This document shows, piece after piece, positions 1 to 16,323 of a DNA stretch of 16,549 nucleotides; positions within the stretch are counted from its first letter, which is position 1, and every line of letters begins with the position of its first letter. A model generated the notes under the pieces. It saw only the letters and a list, made by a program, of their open reading frames with translations, searched no databases and was not told the DNA's origin. Origin of the DNA: Ginkgo biloba (lineage: Eukaryota; Plantae; Ginkgophyta); assembly GCA_024626585.2 (NCBI GenBank), contig JANKJI020000004.1, positions 87,471,018 through 87,487,566 on the forward strand, read 5' to 3'. The position numbers and the translations under genes were made by a program.

Positions 1-638
1 ACACAACACATTAACATTTTTTTCATCTCATATAGAATAATTTTTAATTTTTAATATGAATTCAACACCTATAATAACACAAAAACAATCATATCACCAC
101 CTCCAAATTAGTTAATAAAAAAAAATTATTTTAAAACACTTTTTAAAATAATAAAGAATATAAATTAAATTATTAAAAACAAAAAAGCACTCACAAGGTA
201 AAAGCAAAACAACTAATTAATTAAACAGATGTTGCTATAGAAATTAGTTGTCTACGGCAGTTTTGGCAAGCGCGACTTTATTATGATCTGCCCAATCCCA
301 ACGTATATACAAAGGATCGGCAATCAAGCATGGTTTGCAGTGGAATTTCAAGACATCTGTGCAGCTTTTCATGAACGTTTACGAAATGATACACGCAATT
401 TTTACAATAAAAGGATGAAATTTCAATTAGTAGTGCAGATGGATTCTCTCATAATAAACATACTGAGAAGGACAGAAAAAAATTGATGGCTGCAAATGCC
501 CGTCAATATAATATTATCAGTAGCTTGTATTCTTTTTCCTGAATCTATAGCCGATGGGAGTAAGTGAACTGTGAAGTAAATTCAATGTTGATAAAGTCTT
601 GAACATATTTTGAAAAATTTACGCATGTGCAGAGCTTA

Positions 639-1196
639 ATGCATATCACTAGAATATGTCCATGTCTGCCAGGCTTATGCAAAACAACAAAACCAACAAA
701 GCCACTTTCTTCTCCCACCATTACAACAGTTAGTGCTACTCGCGAAGGAAAACCCACACAAAAATTAAATGGAAAATCACAAGCCAATAACAGCCCGCAT
801 GCCATCACTGCGCGTTTTAATGCTCTGGACGTGAAATCTCTTAGAGAAGGCAGGCAAACCCATGCCCATATACTCATAACTGGACTCCACCAAGACGTTT
901 TTTTGGTGACAAAACTTTTGAGCATGTATTCCAAGTGCGGATGTCTAGTTGATGCACGCCTGGTTTTTGACAGTATACAAAAACCAGACGTGTTTTCGTG
1001 GAATGTGATGATCAGAGGATACGTTATGCACGGACAATGGGAGGAAGCCCTTAAGCTGTATTACAAGATGCAACGGACAGACGTGCAGCCGAACAACTTT
1101 ACCTTTCCTTTCGTTCTCAAGGCTTGTGCTATCTTGTCAGATCTGCAAAAGGGTAAAGACATCCATAAATCCCATAAGCCCCTTCGAATGAATTAG
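639..1196 (+). pseudogene. Truncated PLS-class pentatricopeptide repeat (PPR) protein ORF (about 3 motifs); pseudogene or gene fragment
   Basis: The translation contains typical PLS-PPR motifs: SLREGRQTHAHILITGLHQDVFLVTKLLSMYSKCGCLVDARLVFDSIQKPDVFSWNVMIRGYVMHGQWEEALKLYYKMQRTDVQPNNFTFPFVLKACAILSDLQKGKDIH. Similarity stops abruptly after KDIH (about 1166) and TAG follows at 1194-1196, with no E/DYW domain. The first in-frame ATG is at 639 (the ORF track starts at GTG 627). The N-terminus is Ser/Thr/Lys-rich and could be a transit peptide. Confidence 0.85.
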
Positions 1197-1888: not shown

Positions 1889-3421
1889 TATGCACAGAGA
1901 GAGGGGGATATGTCAAATAAAGGTGGAGTTAGATCCAGAGTAACATCATTGACCATTTATTTGAATCCCTATTATATAAATATGGTCACCACCTTTATAT
2001 TAAAATTTGAATTTATTGTGGTAATTTAGAGTTCTTATACACCAGATGTGGTTTATTGTGGCCTTTTTGTGAGTAGTATTAGACAGTATGGCATGTTCTC
2101 AACTATGTCATAATCCATCTCATATATTGCTTTCTTAATAGATGGTCTCATAGAGAGACTTTAGTCTCTATATTATCATCATATTCTCAACTTTATCTTC
2201 AATATATATATAATTGCAGACCATAGATCCATAAATTAGTCTAATAATTACTCTACAGTTCTATTCACATCCTTTGGAACTTTACCTCACTATTTTGAGT
2301 GATGCCATGAGCTTAAGATTATGTTTCATGAGTTCTTGATGGAATGAATTAAGTATATTTTTACTTTCATTACATCTTGAGAGTCATTCATAGAGGATTG
2401 CTTTGCAACCGTTTGCAATCTTTCATTTCTAAACTCACAGATTACTTGGCACATCATGCAAACTACATAAAAGAGAGAGCAATTTGTAACTAGAGCCCAT
2501 TTTCTAATATTTTGTTGAAATAATTAAAATGTGATAACTCAGAGCTTGGAGGGTGATCTTATGTCTCTCACTTGATCACATCGAATCACTCAAGGGACTA
2601 AGTACTTTTTTAAAGGTTTTCTTTATCCTTTTATTGTCCTTCTTCCATGCCCGCATTGCCTCTTATTCCTTTTATCATCTACAACCATCTAAATGCCTAT
2701 TTACCTTTTCCATTATCATCCACTATNNNNNNNNNNNNNNNNNNNNNNNNNNNNNNNNAGGTCAAAGGCATAAGTAGGAGTGAGGAGTTTACAAAAGGCG
2801 TGCAAGCGAGATTATCACTCACATTTATGCAACTCACACTTCCTTTCATAATATAATTCAACTCTTTTATTCTTAATTTGTTATTGTATTTAATGTTAAT
2901 TGGTCATCTGCAATTAATTTTCCTTTATTTATTATTTATATTTTTATTCTCATGTTATGTAATATGAATTCAATAAAANNNNNNNNNNNNNNNNNNNNNN
3001 NNNNNNNNNNNNNNNNNNNNNNNNNNNNNNNNNNNNNNNNNNNNNNNNNNNNNNNNNNNNNNNNNNNNNNNNNNNNNNNNNNNNNNNNNNNNNNNNNNNN
3101 NNNNNNNNNNNNNNNNNNNNNNNNNNNNNNNNNNNNNNNNNNNNNNNNNNNNNNNNNNNNNNNNNNNNNNNNNNNNNNNNNNNNNNNNNNNNNNNNNNNN
3201 NTCAATAACAAATAATACAACATATGCCTTTTTTGAAATATTAAACTAGAAACAGAGAAAATATTTTCCACTTGTAAGTTGGAGATTGTCTTATGATCCT
3301 TATTTCAAATATATGGATCAATTGAAGAATATATCAAATTAGGTCATTTTTGTTTAGTATATCCTTTCCTATTCATATTTAGTGATCACCTCTAGGTTTA
3401 TATCTAACTCACCCATTAAGG

Positions 3422-3832
3422 GTGGCAGGAGTGGGAGGGGTTGTGTATAACCTAGATGGAAAAGTGAAAATAAAGTATGCTTGGGGGCCTGGAAACGGCA
3501 TGAACAACCAAGCTGAATTATGGGCTCTTTGGCAGGGACTCAAAATACTCCAGCAAAAAAACATTGACTCAATGAAGATCCTGGGGGACTCTTGCATGGC
3601 AATTCTTCGAGCTAGAAAAGGAGAAGAAGACCCAGAATCTGAGTTTTCTGTAATGAAAGATCAATTAAAGATAATCTCAAAAGGCTTTCAATAGTTAGAG
3701 TACCACCATATACTTCGCCATTTAAATGAAGTTGTGGATAAGTTGGCAAACAAAGGAGTCCACCTCAGTTTAGGGGAGGTGAAAATCATAGAACAAGGAG
3801 AAGAAAGAAAGTACACATCTATACCTCCATGA
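3422..3832 (+). pseudogene. RNase H domain (RNase HI-like/RVT_3 type), C-terminal end of LINE ORF2, one internal stop
   Basis: AGVGGVVYNLDG...YAWGPGNGMNNQAELWALWQGL...ILGDS...FQ*LEYHHILRHLNEVVDKLANKGVHLSLGEVKIIEQGEERKYTSIPP*. The NNxAE, GDS and HxxRxxNxxxDxLA motifs are present. Internal TAG at 3692-3694 and terminal TGA at 3830-3832. Confidence 0.85.
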
Positions 3833-4605
3833 ATTACATTTTCTTCAAGATGATTAAGGTTTCCTTGACAAAAAATAAAGACATCTCAAAGGATGCCAAG
3901 GCTATATGTTATGGCATGGGGCTTTATTTGGAAATTCTTTGGATTTCAGAAAGAAACCTATGCAGCATTCAAAGAAGGGGGCGATCATTGATTTTTAATG
4001 ATTTGAGGGAGTGGTGTCTCACCACCCGAATGAGTGGTACTCATTCTCATGAAGCAGATGCAGAGATTAACCCTGCACTCATACATAGAAGTGGAAAGGC
4101 AAGAAGGCGTAGAAGCGATCCATCATAAAGAACTTGTAACATGGGTTTCCTTTAGTTTTGCTTTGTTGAGGAAGACTGGAGTAAAGAAAATGAGCTTTGG
4201 CATAGTGAAAAGAACCTGCTGGAGCGAAGGAAATGACTCTCAATGGAGGAAGGCAGAGGTCGGGTGCTTAGTTCCAGCGGAGATAACTCTCTCACATTCT
4301 AGACAGAAGAAGCTCAAGACAGACTAATCCATGTCGTCTCTTCTCTTAACAAACAACTAGAAGCAATCCTCACAAAGATGGAATCTTTGAAGAATCAATT
4401 GGAAAAGCAATCTGAATTGCTAGAAAGTATAATTGAAAGTTTAAAGAAGGGAAGCAAAGAAGTTGACAACAACATAAAGAGTCTTTCAAATTTGGACTTG
4501 CTCAGTCAAGGAAACCCTGAGCCGATGGATGTAGATGATAGCGAAGACTGGGAGTCTCTGGTTTTGGACATAAATTTGGGGGAAAATCACTCTAAGTTAC
4601 AGTAG
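3829..4605 (+). pseudogene. Extra ORF downstream of LINE RNase H ('ORF3'), 258 codons, C-terminal coiled coil, 4 internal stops, no frameshift
   Basis: A single frame runs from ATG 3829 to TAG 4603-4605, joining the track ORFs 3829-4128 and 4378-4605. Internal stops TAA 4126, TAG 4153, TGA 4234 and TAG 4300 are each one C>T change from CAA/CAG/CGA. It contains the heptad-like segment QDRLIHVVSSLNKQLEAILTKMESLKNQLEKQSELLESIIESLKK. Confidence 0.6.
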
Positions 4606-5432
4606 TATGGTCCTTCTTTTTATCTATTTTGTAAGTGAATTATCTTCTGTTATTTTCCATCTTGATAACATTATAGAATTTTTAGAATTTTGAACTCTCC
4701 TGAGTATGTCAGGGGTTTTTAGAACATAAACTTAATCTCTATCCCTTATGTATATGTATTTTGTTGGATGCCTCCTCCTTACAGAGNNNNNNNNNNNNNN
4801 NNNNNNNNNNNNNNNNNNNNNNNNNNNNNNNNNNNNNNNNNNNNNNNNNNNNNNNNNNNNNNNNNNNNNNNNNNNNNNNNNNNNNNNNNNNNNNNNNNNN
4901 NNNNNNNNNNNNNNNNNNNNNNNNNNNNNNNNNNNNNNNNNNNNNNNNNNNNNNNNNNNNNNNNNNNNNNNNNNNNNNNNNNNNNNNNNNNNNNNNNNNN
5001 NNNNNNNNNNNNNNNNNNNNNNNNNNNNNNNNNNNNNNNNNNNNNNNNNNNNNNNNNNNNNNNNNNNNNNNNNNNNNNNNNNNNNNNNNNNNNNNNNNNN
5101 NNNNNNNNNNNNNNNNNNNNNNNNNNNNNNNNNNNNNNNNNNNNNNNNNNNNNNNNNNNNNNNNNNNNNNNNNNNNNNNNNNNNNNNNNNNNNNNNNNNN
5201 NNNNNNNNNNNNNNNNNNNNNNNNNNNNNNNNNNNNNNNNNNNNNNNNNNNNNNNNNNNNNNNNNNNNNNNNNNNAAAATAAAGGAGAAAATAGCCAATG
5301 GTATGTATTAAAGCTTAAATGGTAGTGATCCCCATGTAACAAAGGCTGAATCAATATTGCCCCATCAAAGGACAACCTAATGCAAAGGAAAATCTACTTA
5401 GAAATCCCTTTGATCAAGTAATGTAAGCTATC

Positions 5433-5881
5433 CTAAAATATGAATGGGCATCTAAAAATAACCTAAGGAGAGTTGGGGCAGGAGGTTGCATCCTCTTGTT
5501 AACAGAATGTTAGATCCTAATCTATGCAAAAAATCTTAGTTATGCCTCTAATAATGTGGTGGAGTATGAAGCAATGATACAAGGTTTGGAGATGGCCAAG
5601 AATCTAGGCTTGAAGAAGATCCTGGTTATGGAGGACTCAAGTTTATTTATTAACCAGGTCTTAGGGAAGTGGTCCAAAGTGGCATGGTCCTTAGAGGACC
5701 TTTTAGTAAAATCTCAAAATTTGGTGAATTCTTTGGAGTCTGCCACCTTCCTATATATTCTTAGGATATTCAACATGTTGGATGACCACTTGGATAATAA
5801 GGGTGTACATCTAAATGTGGGGGGGAAGATATATTTGATTATTCATAATGATATTTTGAGAAGGGGTTGTTCACCTCATGA
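5433..5881 (+). pseudogene. RNase H domain, decayed
   Basis: LKYEWASKNNLRRVGAGGCIL...*...YAKNLSYASNNVVEYEAMIQGLEMAKNLGLKKILVMEDSSLFINQVLGKW...FLYILRIFNMLDDHLDNKGVHL. These are degenerate DGASKGNPG, NNxAEY, GDS and DxLANKG motifs. NKGVHL is identical to copy 1. Confidence 0.85.
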
Positions 5882-6365
5882 TGGAAGCATCATGTCGAGC
5901 GTAGGTGAGGGGGGCTCTATTTCTTTAGACCAATATATAGAAGCTCTTGCCTTTCTCTCTAGAACTTGTTTAGATCTTGTTGTGGCTAAGTGAAAGTGTT
6001 TGGAAATAGGAAATTATGGATTCTAAGTGCCAAGACAGGGATGAAGGTGTAATGGATCCTATCTAGATGATGCACTCCAAAGTATAAGATACTAGTTCCT
6101 CTTCCTACAATGGCAAGTATAATGTCCACTAGCTGGCCGAAGAGATAACATAAATCATAAATGTTCATTTGGAACACATGGAGATGGATATCATTCAAAT
6201 GAAGGAGAACCAATGTTATTTTGGTGAGGCTCTCTAGGCTCTCATGACTACTAACATTCATGCCATATACATTATGGTATACTTGATATCCAGGGAGAAG
6301 CATTGAGTTAGCCAGTTCAAAATCTTGAAGGGTGCACTAGAGAAGTTGAATAAAAATCTTAGAGC
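5878..6365 (+). pseudogene. Decayed extra ORF ('ORF3') of LINE copy 2; runs into the N gap
   Basis: The frame from ATG 5878 reads MMEASCRA*VRGALFL*TNI*KLLPFSLELV*ILLWLSESVWK*...DTSSSSYNGKYNVH*LAEEIT*IINVHLEHMEMDIIQMKENQ.... It has 11 stops, 8 of them TAG, consistent with CAG>TAG decay. It shares LW[IL]SE and the coil pattern with copy 1. Confidence 0.5.
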
Positions 6366-6783
6366 NNNNNNNNNNNNNNNNNNNNNNNNNNNNNNNNNNG
6401 ACATTAAGAATAGGTTTAGAGTCCCATTTATTAAGAAGCAAATGCCTAGTGTAGTAAGTTTTGTTGGTCTAATTCTATCAGATGGTTGATGCCCTATAAT
6501 TTAGTTTTATAACGTGTTATGGGGTTAACCCAGGCCAACCTACTATGCTATCCTCTTTTCTTTCTCTCTATATGTGTTATGTAGGCTTCTTCTAAATGGG
6601 AATTAGTGGTCCCTTTGGCATTATGTATGTGGTCCTATTTGTGGGGGTCTTAGAAGTGTTTTGTCACTAGACCTTAATATACTAGTCTATCNNNNNNNNN
6701 NNNNNNNNNNNNNNNNNNNNNNNNNNNNNNNNNNNNNNNNNNNNNNNNNNNNNNNNNNNNNNNNNNNNNNNNNNNNNNNNNNN

Positions 6784-6805
6784 AAAAAAAAAAAAAAAAA
6801 AAAAA
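6784..6805 (+). repeat. Poly(A) tract (at least 22 A), probable LINE tail
   Basis: A22 immediately after an N gap, downstream of a T-rich UTR-like region. Confidence 0.7.
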
Positions 6806-7435
6806 GAGAGGCTAAATCAAGATTGGATTTAAGGACCTATGTAAAGTTTCATTAATATTTATCCAAAATAAAAGAAAATGATGGCATTGACCTATTAAAG
6901 GAAATTGGTAAAAAATTAACCCTTATAGTACAAACCTATTCAAGAATGAAAATCATCTTGTAAGGAATATTCTCATACTATGAATACCTATAGAATCTTG
7001 AAGATTATTGGAAGAATAAGAAGAAAATTACGAAATAAGAACAATAATGGTTTGTTTTCTAAATTACACCTATTACCACATCATAATCTATCAAAGTCCT
7101 GATTGTATCCACCTAGTTTATGGTATTAAAATATTTATTTTTGATGATTGTACCTACATCGTGCTTATGTGTATGGAATACTAGGTTATTTTTCAAATGC
7201 ACTAGTACTAAGTATACTAATGAGCATTAAGGATATAAAGGACGTGAACATCAATACCAAATATGATATATTCTATATAAGTGTAAGAAAATATAGCATG
7301 GTAGAAAAAAGATCAAAACATTCTCAAAGTTGATTATTATTTGGACGAACATTCAAAGGTTTAATTATAACATCATCTAGTTTAAGCGAGATTAGAGGAT
7401 TTATAGGATCTTTGTCCTTTATAATTAAAACATTA

Positions 7436-8478: not shown

Positions 8479-9040
8479 ATACTCTTAGAGAAAAATCTAT
8501 TAAACTAATATGAGATAAACCTAATCCAAAATAATGATAAGGTAAGGAAATCAATCTGACTATGAGATCCCATTTTCAAGGATTTGCAACCCATCTATAA
8601 TGTTTGAGAAAAAGGAAATTTCTTAAGGGAAAGTTTTTCCTAAAAAAAATTACGCAACATATAAAAATGGAAAGGTAAAAGAAGAATATCTAAATCCTAA
8701 AGTTGAAAAGGATGTCTATAAGAAGGCTAAGGAAGTGATTTAGAAATCAAAGAACAAGGAAAAATCATGGGTTCTAAGACCCCTATAAATTCATCAACCT
8801 ANNNNNNNNNNNNNNNNNNNNNNNNNNNNNNNNNNNNNNNNNNNNNNNNNNNNNNNNNNNNNNNNNNNNNNNNNNNNNNNNNNNNNNNNNNNNNNNNNNN
8901 NNNNNNNNNNNNNNNNNNNNNNNNNNNNNNNNNNNNNNNNNNNNNNNNNNNNNNNNNNNNNNNNNNNNNNNNNNNNNNNNNNNNNNNNNNNNNNNNNNNN
9001 NNNNNNNNNNNNNNNGAAATTGGTGGTGTAGAACATCAAG

Positions 9041-9340
9041 GTAAAGAACATTATGGTTGATATTATATTAGAGGTCAATCTTATCTCTCTAAAAATGCTG
9101 AAGGAATTGGGATGTTTCAAAATGATAAAATGTTGAGATCATCATTAGAAAGTCATATCAGTACCAAGTGGTCCCAAAAGAGTTGTTGAAACTAAAAATT
9201 ACTTGTGAGAGCCTTGAGGTAAAGAAATAATTTGAGCTAATCTACCTAATCTTCTAATTGTGCTATTAGGAAGGTCATGGATTAAAGCCATGAAAGGTTC
9301 TATAAGATTTAAAAAGGACCAAATTAAGTTTAAGTAAGAA
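9041..9340 (+). pseudogene. Retroviral-type aspartic protease remnant
   Basis: VKNIMVDIILEVNLISLKMLKELG is a degenerate D[TS]G active-site context (Asp codon 9059-9061). VLLGRSWIKAMKG (LLGRSW at 9263-9280) matches the LLGRPW C-terminal motif. Confidence 0.75.
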
Positions 9341-9654
9341 AGGACTTGGCTTTATGATCTTTAGATAGATCTAAGGAAGCATTAGAAATTGTAAAGGAGG
9401 ATGAGGTCTACTTTGAGGAAGAGTTATATGATGGTAATTCTAAAATGGAATAAAATATTGAGAACACATATAATTGTATAAAGAAAATATGCGAGCTAGA
9501 TGATGATGGTGTATTAATCCTTGGAAGCATTAACTCAGACATTACTAATTTTGATAACTCAGTAATGGAGTGGGAGAATGAGATGCAAGAGATGCACTAT
9601 TTTGATAATTTTAAAGTTCTACATAAAGAAGACCCAATATTGTTTAATTAGTTA

Positions 9655-9826
9655 AGGGCCAAGATATTCAATGGGTGAGGGGATCCTAAGGAACATTTAA
9701 AGTGGTTCACAATGGTCATCAAATATAAAAACAAGGACTAGAAGGCATATTGGTTTATAACTATATTAAGGGGATAAGCCTTATGGTGCTTTACTACACA
9801 TTTTTATCAATGACAAACATGGAAGA
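9655..9826 (+). pseudogene. Second Gag capsid-like segment, downstream of the protease (left half)
   Basis: KIFNG*GDPKEHLKWFTMVIKYKNKD*KAYWFITILRG*ALWCFTTHFYQ*QTWK matches the F-x-G-x-x-D-P-x-x-H-L ... L-R-G-x-A-L-x-W-F ... T-W pattern of retrotransposon Gag. Confidence 0.6.
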
Positions 9827-10132
9827 TGATGTAACCCAAATCCTAGGTAACCCTTAACTTTTCTCTACTCACAGACTTAAACACTAGCAGAAATACACAT
9901 GCATAACAAGGTTAATAATAACTTATTTTCATTAAAATCCAAATCTTTTGTTATATTACATCACAACCCATTGGCATTTCCACATTATTACACACACATT
10001 CATCCCATAGTCAATGGTTACATCTAACACCCCATACATAGGGTCTATGATTACCCATTATGAGGCTCCCTCCTTGGGGTGTCTCAACAAGCTATACCTA
10101 ACTGCCCCACTCAACTCTTCTATCAATCCTCT

Positions 10133-10336
10133 CCTTGAATTGTATATCATTCATCTTCATCCTTTTACTCTCGCTCCTCATTCGCTTTCTGAATTTGTTG
10201 ATGAAATCGTTGGCTTCCTTGTTGATCTCCTCGGGAGGAATTATATTTGAGCGAGTGATCCGTTTCGGATCCCAACAATCAAGATTTCTGTCCATTTTTC
10301 GTGAAGTCCCAACTTGCGGTAGAAATTTGGAGAAAA
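10133..10336 (-). pseudogene. Foreign gene fragment inside the 3' LTR, resembling a DUF761 (cotton fibre-expressed protein-like) motif
   Basis: MDRNLDCWDPKRITRSNIIPPEEINKEANDFINKFRKRMRSE resembles the DUF761 consensus [DE]-[IV]-D-x-x-A-[DE]-x-F-I-x-x-F-x-x-x-[LM]-R. ATG at 10295 is in a gaaaaATGG context. The segment is absent from the other LTR and flanked by a 41-bp identical duplication. Confidence 0.55.
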
Positions 10337-10772
10337 GTAATCAGTTTTGAGTTGATNNNNNNNNNNNNNNNNNNNNNNNNNNNNNNNNNNNNNNNNNNNN
10401 NNNNNNNNNNNNNNNNNNNNNNNNNNNNNNNNNNNNNNNNNNNNNNNNNNNNNNNNCTATACCTAACTGCCCCACTCAACTCTTCTATCAATCCTCTAGT
10501 TCTATCCTCTTTTGTGTTGCCTTAAATTTGACATGTACAATCCTTATTCCTCTCTATTTTAATCCTCACCTTCCTTCAACTACCTCATGGTTGATGTCTA
10601 CATTCTTTCTTTCTCTCTATTTTATTCCTTACTTTTCAAGCTTCCTCACAATTGACGATCTACTTGGTTCTCCTTCATCTTGACTTTATCTTCCAATGTG
10701 CTTCCTCATGGTCAAGGGTATGCACTATTATCTCCCCCTCCTATAGTATCATTTTGAATGAACACTTATATA

Positions 10773-10814
10773 GGATTTCAAATTATTCCTTGTGGATTTC
10801 AAATTATTCCTTGT
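10773..10814 (+). repeat. Perfect 21-bp tandem duplication within the LTR
   Basis: ggatttcaaattattccttgt occurs twice (10773-10793 and 10794-10814). Confidence 0.9.
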
Positions 10815-12301
10815 CACCAAATTCTCTCACTCGATGCTCTAGTTGGTGAGCTCCATTACTGATCACTTTTAATTCTCCTCTGGAACATAATAACCTTCCA
10901 TCTTCTCCTCCTTCTAGTCACTACTCCCTAAGAGATACAACTTGATCTCTTCCTTAAAAATGGTATGGTGCCTCCCTTGGCATTATATATGAGTCTTTAT
11001 CACTTCACTCCACTGTCAGGGAAGAGGATTCATCATAATTACTTCCCATACCTTAGGTATGGTTCCTTGTTGAGTTATCTTTGTTGTGGTATGACCCCTT
11101 GCATGTCATCCTTGTTGTCTTTTGACCTTTAGGGTATTCCAACACTCCATCTCCTCACGTAGTTCCTTACACCTTACTAAAAATCCCAAAACCCAAACTT
11201 TGAATATTGCCTCCAAAGTCTCTAGATATGAGGCTTTTCTTCACTAGGGATTACTTCTCCTTTTAGGTCCATAGGATGTAGAGAAGTCAAGCATCCACCT
11301 ATTCCTTCTCAATATTTGAACTTCTAAACTCTATTTTATNNNNNNNNNNNNNNNNNNNCATTCTATTTTTATTTTGAGTCCATAGGAACATAACTTCACT
11401 TGGTTCTTCCCAACCTCTAGTCACTTCTTCCTTCATAGCTTCGGACGTGAAGATTTTCTCAACTTGAATTTAATCTCCCTTAAAGTTTACACCCACTCCT
11501 TAGGGATTTTAAACATGGGATGACCTCTTATACCTTCCAAACCTCTGAATACCCAAATGCCTGATACTTGAGATTTTTTCTCTCCCCTTCCACTTGGCCT
11601 TNNNNNNNNNNNNNNNNNNNNNNNNNNNNNNATCGCCTGATCCTTTCCTGTTGTCATTACTTGGAGCTCAACACAAACCTTCTCTTCTTCCTATTTGTAA
11701 TCACTCCTTCTCCTTCTCCTCCCTACTTGTTATTAATTTTCTCTATTAGGTGTCATATCCCTTATCCACTATTGGATCTCACCTACCATTGCAGCTTATC
11801 GGTGCTCACCAAATCACCTCTACCATAATTGATTTTTCCAACATCCACCTCCTTTTGTCTTTATCTTCATGCACCTATTATGCGCTCCCTTGTTAGACAT
11901 ATTTATTCATTGCCACAAGACTATTGTCAATGGTCCTTCTATCATCAAAGTCATTTTTTGTTGCTCCTCTATCACTGTTAGATCCTACGACTTGATCTAT
12001 TATCATCTTGATGCACCTTCTATGCTCTTCATGGCCTTCAACTAACCCTTCTTCTCCATCATCATTAAGACCTCTCATTTTCTACCTCTATGTGCCTATA
12101 ATGCACCTTCCTTCTATCATCAATGCTATTGAATACCTTTCCCTTATCTTGGAGTTATCCCTTTTTCTCTACCATCTAACCACTATTGATTATCTCTCTT
12201 TTTTCCGTACCATCCTTGCTTCCTTAAAATGACCTATCAATATTCTTTATCTCCATCCCTACATTAACTCTACTAAAATAGTTGAGGATATGCGTGCATC
12301 A

Positions 12302-12369: not shown

Positions 12370-14008
12370 ATTTACTTGACTTTATTGGTTCTCTTTTCAC
12401 AATCCTAATGTCATCTTATGGAGGTAATATCCTTCCATGTCACCCAGTATTTTTTGTGGCTTCTTCCTAGCCTTTATTCCACTTCCTCATGCACTTGATC
12501 TGAATGCTCTACCAACACTTCTATCCTATCACCTCTACTCTTATTCAAGGGTACCTACCACACAACCATATGATTAGCCTCAATNNNNNNNNNNNNNNNN
12601 NNNNNNNGAGTTATATTTAGGTTGACCCTATCACTTGTAGCAACATCAAAAAAATATGCCTCCTTGAGGCTCTTTATAGTTTCCTCCTCTTCTACACCAT
12701 CACCTGATGGTACCTCACTCATCTCCTTTAGCTCATTTTTCGAACCTTCTATGTTCCATTCACCCAAATCCTTTGAGTCATTTGTCCAATCCCTTGGACA
12801 TTTTGCTACACTCTCTATAGGTAGTTCATCCATCTCCTCCAGATGTTTGTTCTCCTCCTCCTCCTCCTCATGGATCTTATCACCATATTTGTACACCCTC
12901 ACTTCCTTTAAGCATCCTCCCACTGATATTTCTCTTCTCTGACCTCCTATTGGTTCCTCCTTTCCTTCTAGTTCCACTATCATTAGTGCACCCTATTCTT
13001 AGTCATATTCTTCTTGATACTTTGTTAGTGTGGTCTCCTTTCAATGATACTCACTCTCATCCCTTGGATCTACCTACCAATTATTGTCATTTGCAACACA
13101 ACATACATATTCTTCAAGGATCCTTGATCCTTCTTCCTTCTCTTCCATACTAACCAATATCTCTAGGTTTTTTGCATTACTTGACTCATCAACACCTCCA
13201 AATAGATTCTGCTTCTTCTCTATGAGCCCTTTCGCATCCACTGCCTCCTTCTTAAGGCTCTTCTAATCTTCTTTTAATTTTGTACCATCCTTCATCGCCA
13301 TGCCATATTCTCACTTATCTTCGAGAGTGATCATTATCATATTATCTTCTTTATGTGGTATCTTCAAATGGTCAAGACCCCATATAGGACTACCAGAAAG
13401 ATACACCTCCTCTACACAATCCAAACACTCTTTCTTCACCACTTTAGTAGCTTCTTCTATTATCACCATAACCCCTCATCTTACATATCACCAACCATAA
13501 ATTTTAGATAGTTGAGGCCTAAATAACATAATTTCTTCATTTTTGATCGCACATATGGGACCTCCTTCTATGATGCCTTCTCAACGCATAATTTTTTTTC
13601 CTCCTCNNNNNNNNNNNNNNNNNNNNNNNNNNNNNNNNNCTCTTCAAACTCCTTTAAATATTCTCCTTCTTGTAGTTTGCATAGAACCACCTCTAGTTCT
13701 CCCTCCAAAACTTTCATTAGCACCTCACACAACACTCCCTCTGGATCATATCTCACTAGATCCTCTACATCCATAGGATTATCCCCAACTAATAAACCTA
13801 TCTTGGGTTCTATAGGAATTCTCTTAGCAGATTCCATAACTCTCTTCCTTTCTATCAACCTCTTCTATAGTCCTCTCAATAAGGATCTCATTCTCTCCAC
13901 TTGCTGGTGTCTTCAATCTTTTTCTTCTAGCTTTATGATTCTTTCCCTTAGGGCTCCCAACTCCCTATCTAATGCAACACTTTTATCTAGAACTAATATT
14001 GGTGCCAT
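12370..14008 (-). pseudogene. Decayed internal ORF of the LTR element: Glu/Lys-rich, coiled-coil N-terminus, chromodomain-like C-terminus
   Basis: From ATG 14008 it reads MAPILVLDKSVALDRELGALRERIIKLEEKD*.... One frame appears to hold from about 13500 to 12555. Near the end is RIEVLVEH...KKYWVTWK/(frameshift)LPP*DDIRIVKRE, resembling YLVKWKGLPxEDATW. No RT, RNase H or integrase motifs were seen. Confidence 0.55.
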
Positions 14009-14168
14009 CTTCACTTCCCTTATAGCCAATCCTTAGCTCTGTATGCAATTCTCACCTTTCTACAACCTTGTTCTCTCCTAAACACTTCTTAACTAGATCT
14101 TACACTGGATGACACTACCTCCACTAAATTCTTGGCTCTATAACACTTCTTCAATAATATTTCACTAA

Positions 14169-14179
14169 CTATAATACCA
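14169..14179 (-). promoter_or_regulatory. Primer binding site, tRNA-iMet type (degenerate)
   Basis: On the minus strand, TGGTATTATAG lies 2 nt after the 5' LTR end and matches TGGTATCAGAG at 9 of 11 positions. Confidence 0.75.
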
Positions 14180-14181
14180 GA

Positions 14182-16323
14182 TGATATAACATGGATCCTA
14201 AGTAAACCCAAAATATTCTCTAGTCATGGAATTAAATGTAAGTAGAATTACACATGTAGATCAAAGTTAATAGTAATCTCTTTTCATTAAAATCTAAATC
14301 GTTTATTATATTACATCATGGCCGACTAACCTTCCCATAGGATTATCTACATAGTCATCCCATAGATGGGGGTTACATCCAACACCCCACATAAAGGGTC
14401 TATAGTTATACATTACATGGTTCTCTCCTTAGGGAATCTCCACAAGATATACTCGACTGCCTTATTTGGCCCTTTTATCATTCCTCTAATTCTATCATCT
14501 TTTATGCTGCCTTATAGTCAGCGTATGCACTCTTTATTTCAATCCTCACATTCATAATTTATTGGTCTCTACCTCTTCTTGCCTCATAGTTAGCATCTTT
14601 ACTCCTTATTCCTCTTCATTTTAATCCTTTCCTTCTAGGATGCCTCACATTAATGATCTACTTGGTGTTCCTTCACCTTGGCACTATATTCTATTATGTT
14701 GCCTTATGGTTGGTGATCTATACTATTCTCTTCCCTACCATAGTCTCCTTTTGACTACATACTTATATGGGCNNNNNNNNNNNNNNNNNNNNNNAAATTC
14801 TTCCTTGACACTAAATTCTCTCACTTGATGCTCTAGTTGGTGAGCTCTATTACCGCTCACTTTTAATTCTCCTCATGACCCAGGATGGCCTTCCATCTTC
14901 TCCTCTTTCTCATCACTACTTCCCAAGAGATACACCTTGATCTCTTCCTTAAATGTGGTATGGTGCCTCTCTTATCATTATATGTGAGTCTCTATCACTT
15001 TACTTAATTTTAAGGGAGAGGGTTCATCGTAATTATTGCTCGTACCTTGGCACGATTCCTTGTTGAGTTGTCTCTATCATGGTATGACCCCTTATATGTC
15101 AGCCTTATTATCCTTCATCCTTTAGGGAATTCCAATGCTCCATCTCCTCGTGCAATACCTTGTTCCTTGCTAAAAATCCTAAAACCTAAACTTTGAACAT
15201 TGCCTCCAAAGTCTCTAGATTCATGACTTTTCTTCACTAGGGTTTACTTATCCTTTCAAGTCTATGGGATGTGGACAAGTCAAGCGTCCACCTCTTCCTC
15301 CTCAATATTTGAACTCCCAAAATTAATTTGCAATTGGGTGTAAGTCCTTTCACCAACTCTATTCTATTATGCTTTTGGATATGTGAGTATATCACTTTAT
15401 TTGGGTCTTCTTGACCTTCAGTTGCTTCTTCCTTCATTACTTTAGATGTGAAGCTTTCCTCAACTTGAATCTAATCTCCCTTCTATTATACACCCATTCC
15501 TTAGGGATTTTCAATGTAGAATATCCTATTATCCCTTCCAAACCTTTGAATACCTAAATGTATGGTACTAGAGATTTCTTCTCTATCCTTCTGCTTGGCT
15601 TCCACTTGACTCCTTTTTTGTCTATGTGGCCATCACTTAGCCCTTTTATCTGATCAATACTTGGCCCTTTCATCTTCTTACTACTTGGCCCTCAACACTA
15701 GCCTTATCTTCTTCCTCTTCTTAGTCACTCATTCTCCTTATCCTCCCTACCTATTGTTAGTTTCTCTATCGATTATTAGATCCCTTCTCCAATGTTGGCT
15801 CTAACATGCCACCTCATCTTATCAGTGCCCACCAGATCACCTCTATCACAATTAGTTTCTATGAACTCTACCTCCTTTAGTCTTCATCTTCATATACCTA
15901 TTGTTGCTCCCTCATTGCATGCATTTTTTTATTACTACTAGACCACTGTTAGTAGTCCTTATGCTGTTAGAGTTGGTTTTTATTGCTCCTCTATCATTGT
16001 TGTGTCCTTTAACTCAATCTCTTTACAACTCCATTCACCTTTGGTGATCTTCATACCCTTGACCCAACCCTTCTTCTCTTTCATCATTCGAACCTCTCAT
16101 CCGTTATATCTATATGCCTACAATATGCCTTCCTTCTATCATTGATGCTATTGGCCACCTTTTTCCTCTCTCAAAGATGTCTCCTTTGCTCTTCTATTTG
16201 ACCATTATTGGTGATCTCCCTTATGTCGGTGTCGACCTTGCTTTCTCAAAATGACCTATTGATCCTCCTTATCTCCTGCACTACGTCATCTTTGCTAAAA
16301 TGGTTGGGAATGCACAAGCATTA
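14182..16323 (-). repeat. 5' LTR (2142 bp)
   Basis: On the + strand it begins tgatataac and ends acaagcatta, each terminus one transition away from TGATG/CATCA. It is colinear with 9827-12301. Confidence 0.88.

Follow-up and report, generated by a model that had tools for sequence, protein, structure and literature searches.

The 16,549-nucleotide stretch of Ginkgo biloba DNA analysed here (hereafter the window) is AT-rich plant DNA interrupted by 13 assembly gaps, and it carries on its plus strand two LINE copies in which an RNase H segment is followed at once by a long reading frame. Copy 1 begins with a decayed 5' remnant (3202-3418), a region in which sister contigs are present; the copy is 5'-truncated, and a search for its TSD and its true start found neither. 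Where the sister contigs come loose, at 3418-3427, their ends code for the beginning of the RNase H motif, a part that is absent from copy 1. Sister contigs also break on both sides of about 60 bp (3362-3420) that separate the RNase H from the linker preceding it; copy 1 has probably gained a small insertion there. The archaeal-type RNase H, the C-terminus of an L1 ORF2, occupies 3419-3832 (Pfam RVT_3, E 7e-7), with one internal TAG at 3692 and a TGA stop at 3830-3832, and ends at the same terminal Pro-stop as relatives that have zf-RVT and RT upstream. The stop overlaps an ATG in the motif ATGA (3829-3832), which is kept in the loose ends of the sister copies; these read in register with the start of the following frame. 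This extra ORF, frame A (3829-4605, 258 codons), has exactly the extent and position of the original prediction; it holds four internal stops (TAA 4126, TAG 4153, TGA 4234 and TAG 4300), its openness exceeds that of dinucleotide shuffles (P=3e-4) and the antisense frames are closed. A coiled-coil helix is predicted at 4306-4506 (AlphaFold pLDDT>90), followed by an acidic tail to 4602 and by a T-rich 3'UTR (4606-4786, 42% T). The alignment of this UTR with that of a related locus (L004) stops about 50 nt short of the L004 A-tail, suggesting that the last 50 nt or so of copy 1 and its poly(A) probably lie inside the assembly gap at 4787-5275.

Copy 2 is a separate insertion (5360-6805), flanked by 17-bp TSDs at 5343-5359 and 6809-6825 that differ at two positions (chance 1/3000). 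It consists of the 5'-truncated end of an ORF2 with its RNase H (5360-5881; RVT_3, E 3e-9), the junction CCTCATGA at 5874-5881, one base shorter than that of copy 1, frame B (5878-6365; 162 codons with 11 stops, 8 of them TAG), a T-rich 3' region common to sister copies (6400-6691) and a poly(A) tail of 22 A (6784-6805) that abuts the right TSD. A single contig of sister copies, 80-85% identical to the window, spans 5384-6277 and 6452-6596. Because copy 2 has its own TSD, the gap at 4787-5275 separates two independent insertions, each frame being found on the same flank as the RNase H that precedes it, and continuity across it is neither expected nor needed. Contigs of run X1 bridge both gaps with approximately zero letters, but such zero-length gaps were rejected since X2, X8 and a sister copy disagree: contig 7 of X2 has 443 letters to the left of 5276 with no joint to 4786, and from 6277 to 6452 a sister copy counts 182 letters against 140 plus 34 N in the window. 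The gap sizes as estimated are therefore probably roughly right, and none of the conclusions hinges on them. All the X1 contigs have a depth of about 80 and the bridging contig is identical to the window; these uniform-depth contigs may derive from the assembly itself and are unsuited to closing gaps in this genome.

The rest of the window contains a PPR gene fragment that ends abruptly (627-1196, plus strand; PPR_2, E 2e-17), decayed gag-like coding fragments of a gypsy-type element (9016-9830, plus strand) and two strongly skewed units, 70-85% identical and about 4 kb apart (9807-12284 and 14162-16306), which are probably decayed LTR-element repeats. Minus-strand frames near these units (12555-12983 and 13568-13858) gave no Pfam match in the pieces tested. 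An exact 41-bp duplicate (10092-10132 and 10457-10497), whose second copy begins right after the gap at 10357-10456, is likely an assembly overlap artefact.

The two RNase H fragments have no mutual blastn match and both are RVT_3 domains with a protein similarity score of 96, bearing out the view that they are divergent. Both window copies and their nearest kin (L001 and L004) are truncated at RNase H, and the class of the window copies is therefore read from relatives. A search with the RNase H of copy 1 returned 293 proteins, among which those with long N-termini carry zf-RVT and RT; the Pinus taeda proteins PITA_11786 and PITA_36126 belong to the same RNase H family. Upstream of RNase H, RT and zf-RVT are found in L012, zf-RVT in L008 and RVT_1 with zf-RVT in L016, where APE motifs are visible by eye, so that, of the domains expected upstream, RT was recovered in more distant relatives (L012, L016) and putative endonuclease motifs in L016, but neither in the truncated window copies or L001/L004. 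The ORF2 of the relatives all end at the same Pro-stop as the window copies. At the downstream end, an A-tail with a TSD was found, as anticipated, in copy 2, L004, L012 and L014, and these four and L017 combine poly(A), a TSD of variable length and 5' truncation. Taken together, zf-RVT and RT upstream, the shared Pro-stop, poly(A), long TSDs and 5' truncation argue for an L1-clade LINE with archaeal RNase H and not for a Tat LTR element. Both window copies have the archaeal-type RNase H at the ORF2 C-terminus that PMC5348765 and PMC4408406, citing Smyshlyaev et al. 2013, report for plant L1 elements of the Ta11 lineage. The layout of two ORFs followed by a short 3'UTR is not that of copy 1 and about 10 relatives, whose A-rich ends lie about 0.7-1.8 kb after the stop.

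We read 15 distinct loci other than the window copies downstream of the ORF2 stop. A long sense frame follows in ten (L004, L005, L006, L007, L008, L012, L014, L018, L019 and L020), two have a short UTR only (L002 and L017, A-tail at +180 and +236), L003 ends too soon to be scored, L001 breaks off after 73 codons, which include a single early stop, and the L016 frame of 135 codons is interrupted. The proposed occurrence in RNase H-bearing plant LINEs thus holds for about 10 of the 15 loci and fails for L002 and L017; in the RNase H tree of the search matches, presence of the ORF forms no cluster. TSDs enclose RNase H, frame, T-rich UTR and A-tail in L004 (20 bp, one mismatch), L012 (15-17 bp) and L014 (15 bp, one mismatch), and consequently the frame travels in the LINE RNA. 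The extra ORF is thus part of the retrotransposed unit; it has kept its reading frame, and some families do without it. Over the first 600 nt, the best sense frames of 11 loci (copy 1 and the ten long-tailed loci, copy 2 and the short loci being left out) contain 44 stops in total, against 87.5+-7 after shuffling and 88 on the antisense strand. Stops are present in every copy seen except L008; L007 and L020 are GC-rich, and the first half of their extra ORF is open by chance.

Several features of single loci deserve mention. A short tandem duplication with a frameshift lies inside the RNase H of L004 (5830-6080). The extra ORF of L008 (4669-5160) is stop-free, 163 codons long and preceded by an ATGA overlap, and has neither coil nor acidic tail; it is either truncated or of a different type. 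The extra ORFs of L005 (1830-3249), L007 (4839-5864) and L020 (8524-9551) start with a stretch rich in proline and contain a Cys-Ser/Thr-Cys-Pro motif, possibly a small metal site or a link across families. Conifer-type LINE DNA (L014/L015, L017, L004-L006) was met in marine (TARA) and JGI metagenomes and in GCA_013548415.1; the RNase H of L017 is nearly identical to a Pinus taeda protein, which makes host or pollen contamination likely.

What the extra ORF encodes can be outlined for frame A. The AlphaFold model of 4303-4602 is a single helix over residues 2-68 (67 residues) followed by the acidic tail, and the heptad score of the coil is above all shuffles, a rough guide given its approximate scoring matrix; the model of the N-terminal piece is uninformative (pTM 0.36). 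Coil and acidic tail recur in most relatives, L008 excepted. The hydropathy maximum is 0.9 in frame A and up to 2.1 in others, so that a transmembrane segment is not consistent. Pfam searches with the extra ORF pieces gave generic sub-threshold coiled-coil matches only, and word searches, run with separate length-limited pieces (the RNase H of copy 1, codons 1-99 of frame A, an alignment of three sequences), were blank. Frame A pieces had no database homologue in searches that were length-limited and sensitive to close kin only; a metagenome scan with frame A and viral scans gave no match, and the ESM Atlas gave no usable match for frame A or for the intact L008 ORF, whose exact sequence is present there with no related fold. 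Between one and the same pair of elements, identity is about 25% in the extra ORF and 45-50% in the RNase H, and this faster evolution of the extra ORF fits a host conflict. Tentatively, the product could be an accessory protein that forms oligomers and acts on the RNP or on factors of the host: it would bind host factors via its coil and acidic tail and might aid RNP assembly or transport, or counter silencing.

L1 ORF1p also carries a coiled coil, and the extra ORF might for this reason be a relocated equivalent of ORF1, an RNA chaperone, in which case the elements would have two ORFs in reversed order and not three. The elements with a clear extra ORF are too short to reach ORF1, which leaves room for this reading; calling the ORF the third presupposes an ORF1. 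Yet no RRM, DUF4283 or zinc-knuckle Pfam match was obtained in any piece, and L016, which has an ATGA junction and the short 135-codon frame, shows by eye a basic ORF1-like tail before its endonuclease. We regard relocation of ORF1 as unlikely, although it fares best among the alternatives to an additional gene.

Another possibility is a long 3'UTR that codes for nothing and is maintained for the structure of the RNA, its openness resulting from composition and shared ancestry. The comparison of related elements bears on this directly (broken frames being read with X at stops). Copy 1, L001 and L004 form a supported clade in the RNase H tree (100/92), and frame A is colinear with the frame of L004, a locus from another sample than the window, over codons 54-255 (z 10-11 in a shuffle test); L001 and L004 match with z=13, the L007 and L020 extra ORFs are 37% identical over 311 aa (E 6e-44) and L018 and L019 are homologous in the coil region (z=9.8). 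Across families, matches are from coil to coil only. In a frame-blind DNA alignment of frame A and L004 (nt 226-701), 10 of 14 indels are multiples of 3 and the rest offset each other in pairs, and the alignment of their 3'UTRs has no multiple-of-3 indel pattern. pN/pS between A and L004 is 0.81 overall and 0.68 [0.51-0.95] in the C-terminal half, compared with 1.05-1.14 in the other two frames; for L007-L020 the C-terminal half gives 0.35 [0.27-0.43], with an RNase H control of 0.32, and for L001-L004 the interval includes 1. Since the A and L004 copies are both dead, their ratio is pushed towards 1. pN/pS is thus below 1 in two family pairs, as an ORF under constraint predicts: purifying selection acts on the extra ORF within families, moderately in that of frame A. 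Codon-position identities are 0.52/0.54/0.46 for A-L004, where the third position is only modestly lower, a point in favour of a non-coding UTR, as are the lack of openness of frame B and the recovery of 0 reads in one poly(A) RNA run, of which 6% was read. The pattern for L007-L020 (0.66/0.68/0.32) largely refutes the non-coding reading for that pair, and more generally the frame-keeping indels, the pooled stop deficit confined to the sense strand and the distinct T-rich UTR that begins right after the extra ORF stop make it very unlikely.

These comparisons replace the argument by which the extra ORF was originally recognised, namely the resemblance of frames A and B. That they align could not be upheld (score 33 against a shuffle mean of 31, z=0.3). 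The LWISE/LWLSE block and the Ser-rich linker do stand where described (W38 in A, W36 in B) and were rejected as conserved motifs, because W38 and the Ser run are lost in the close relatives of A. The C-terminal coil of A is borne out by the predicted single helix. The explanation of all internal stops by single C>T changes is empty because every stop codon begins with T, and holds for any stop codon; at 4126 the differences among sister copies fall on the first and third base, unlike a C>T pattern. The claimed lack of frameshifts is not judgeable from one copy, and sister copies over B have deletions of 1 and 4 bases. With A and B not alignable and the C>T argument empty, the two-copy comparison does not carry the claim of an extra coiled-coil ORF after ORF2; what sustains it are the independent loci, the TSDs, the frame conservation and pN/pS<1, and conservation in the proper sense is found within families, only the layout being common across them. 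Regarding frame B itself, openness is not above shuffles (P=0.44-0.89), only TAA and TGA taken together being scarce (P=0.02 for the fixed frame and 0.07 when three frames are allowed), and its match to the L004 frame is weak (z=2.0), in a register that agrees with the proposed coil alignment and not with LWxSE. Frame B, inconclusive when taken alone, is probably the decayed extra ORF of a second family. At the level of families, a real extra ORF after ORF2 is thus very likely in the case of frame A and somewhat favoured in that of frame B.

The junction between ORF2 and the extra ORF is itself informative. The ATG overlaps the ORF2 stop in seven loci, as ATGA in copy 1, L008, L016, L018 and L019 and as TAATG in L012 and L014, and stops are fewest in the -1 frame in every one of them, by a margin of one stop in L016, L018 and L019. 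In L001, L004, L007 and L020 the extra frame continues in frame after a single stop, and in L005 an ATG lies four bases after the ORF2 stop. It could be argued that different families separately gained unrelated coding fragments of host genes or transposable elements by 3' transduction, so that the extra ORFs would not be a single gene and some would be passengers: L1 3' transduction is known (PMC6431247), no homology crosses families beyond the coil, lengths range from 163 to about 500 codons and the frame relative to ORF2 differs among families. Transduced DNA, however, would come after the UTR of the element, and the extra ORFs begin right at the ORF2 stop or only a few bases from it; the recurring stop/start overlap, the coil and acidic layout and the maintained selection also speak against it, and we give this scenario marginally less credit still than a non-coding UTR. 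AUGA and UAAUG overlaps are a signature of coupled termination-reinitiation, known in viruses and in the LINE SART1 (PMC5972666). By analogy, ribosomes would reach the extra ORF through termination-reinitiation at the overlap or, in the families where it is in frame with ORF2, through read-through of the stop or reinitiation close by; we infer that such translation is fairly likely, and either route implies a product at low level only. UGGGA (TURBS motif 1) was sought upstream of the copy 1 junction and not found.

Least of all can frame A belong to a neighbouring element as its ORF1/Gag, or be the eORF of a Tat lineage III LTR element of gymnosperms, which does combine a C-terminal aRNH with a 3' eORF (PMC4408406), since that eORF is antisense with a plant mobile domain where here a sense ORF without Pfam domain faces closed antisense frames, the upstream domain is zf-RVT and not integrase, what follows is a UTR, poly(A) and a TSD of 15-20 bp and not pol or an LTR, and the TSD-bounded L004, L012 and L014 refute it.

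Our preferred reading is that the window pieces are dead gymnosperm L1 LINEs with an extra sense coiled-coil ORF between ORF2 and a T-rich UTR, which we consider likely. Both pieces would be 5'-truncated L1-clade copies with an archaeal-type RNase H at the end of ORF2; the RNA of many families in this group would extend beyond the ORF2 stop through a further sense ORF, about 160-500 codons long, arranged as a variable N-terminal part, usually a coiled coil, and an acidic tail, and followed by a T-rich UTR of 180-270 nt and poly(A). It is tempting to go further and see in it an old, widespread third gene of gymnosperm L1, stop/start-coupled, whose rapidly evolving coiled-coil product would be an accessory protein (for anti-silencing or RNP transport, or env-like) unlike those described for LINEs, a proposal to which we give slightly less than even weight.

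Known systems offer partial parallels. Ta11-type plant L1 elements share the aRNH that ends ORF2 behind CCHC/zf-RVT, the 5' truncation, the poly(A) and the 15-20 bp TSD, but are described with two ORFs (PMC9033089), whereas here ORF2 and the 3'UTR are separated by a selected sense ORF. Sireviruses (SIRE1) supply the closest analogy with their ENV-like ORF, likewise a sense ORF after pol, present in some families only, with unproven function and with little similarity between elements apart from coiled coils (PMC3414828); it is expressed by stop suppression or an internal promoter (PMC3414828). Sireviruses are Ty1/copia LTR elements, not LINEs, and no consistent transmembrane segment is found here, with none clear in frame A; identity with a Sirevirus-type ENV-like ORF was therefore rejected in spite of the coil, and the likeness is one of analogy only. 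Tat eORFs (PMD-CC and Tr28-CC), first seen in gymnosperm lineage III, are also coiled-coil extra ORFs of aRNH-bearing plant retroelements (PMC4408406), but they are antisense at the 3' end or sense at the 5' end, have a PMD or Tr28 domain and belong to LTR elements, none of which applies here. The UAAUG coupling of SART1, like the arrangement in mammalian L1, serves a downstream LINE cistron through an overlapping or nearby stop/start (PMC5972666), there from ORF1 to ORF2 and here, it would seem, from ORF2 to a further ORF. Primate L1 ORF0 is a third ORF in L1 as well, but is antisense, 5', 71 aa long and primate-specific (PMC5203782). No 3' ORF of plant LINEs is described in the literature that our search covered (papers other than Smyshlyaev 2013 and Heitkam 2014, and not Repbase).

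L1 is regarded as a two-ORF element, and the plant extra ORFs that we found described, the Sirevirus ENV-like ORFs and the Tat eORFs, belong to LTR elements. A selected 3' gene in LINEs would show that the same solution arose in a non-LTR lineage. Families with and without the extra ORF exist side by side and offer a natural comparison, and because 5' truncation of LINEs leaves very many copies of exactly this end in gymnosperm genomes, the gene can be examined in depth with existing assemblies. The extra ORF is also a candidate case of reinitiation from ORF2 to an ORF3 in plants.
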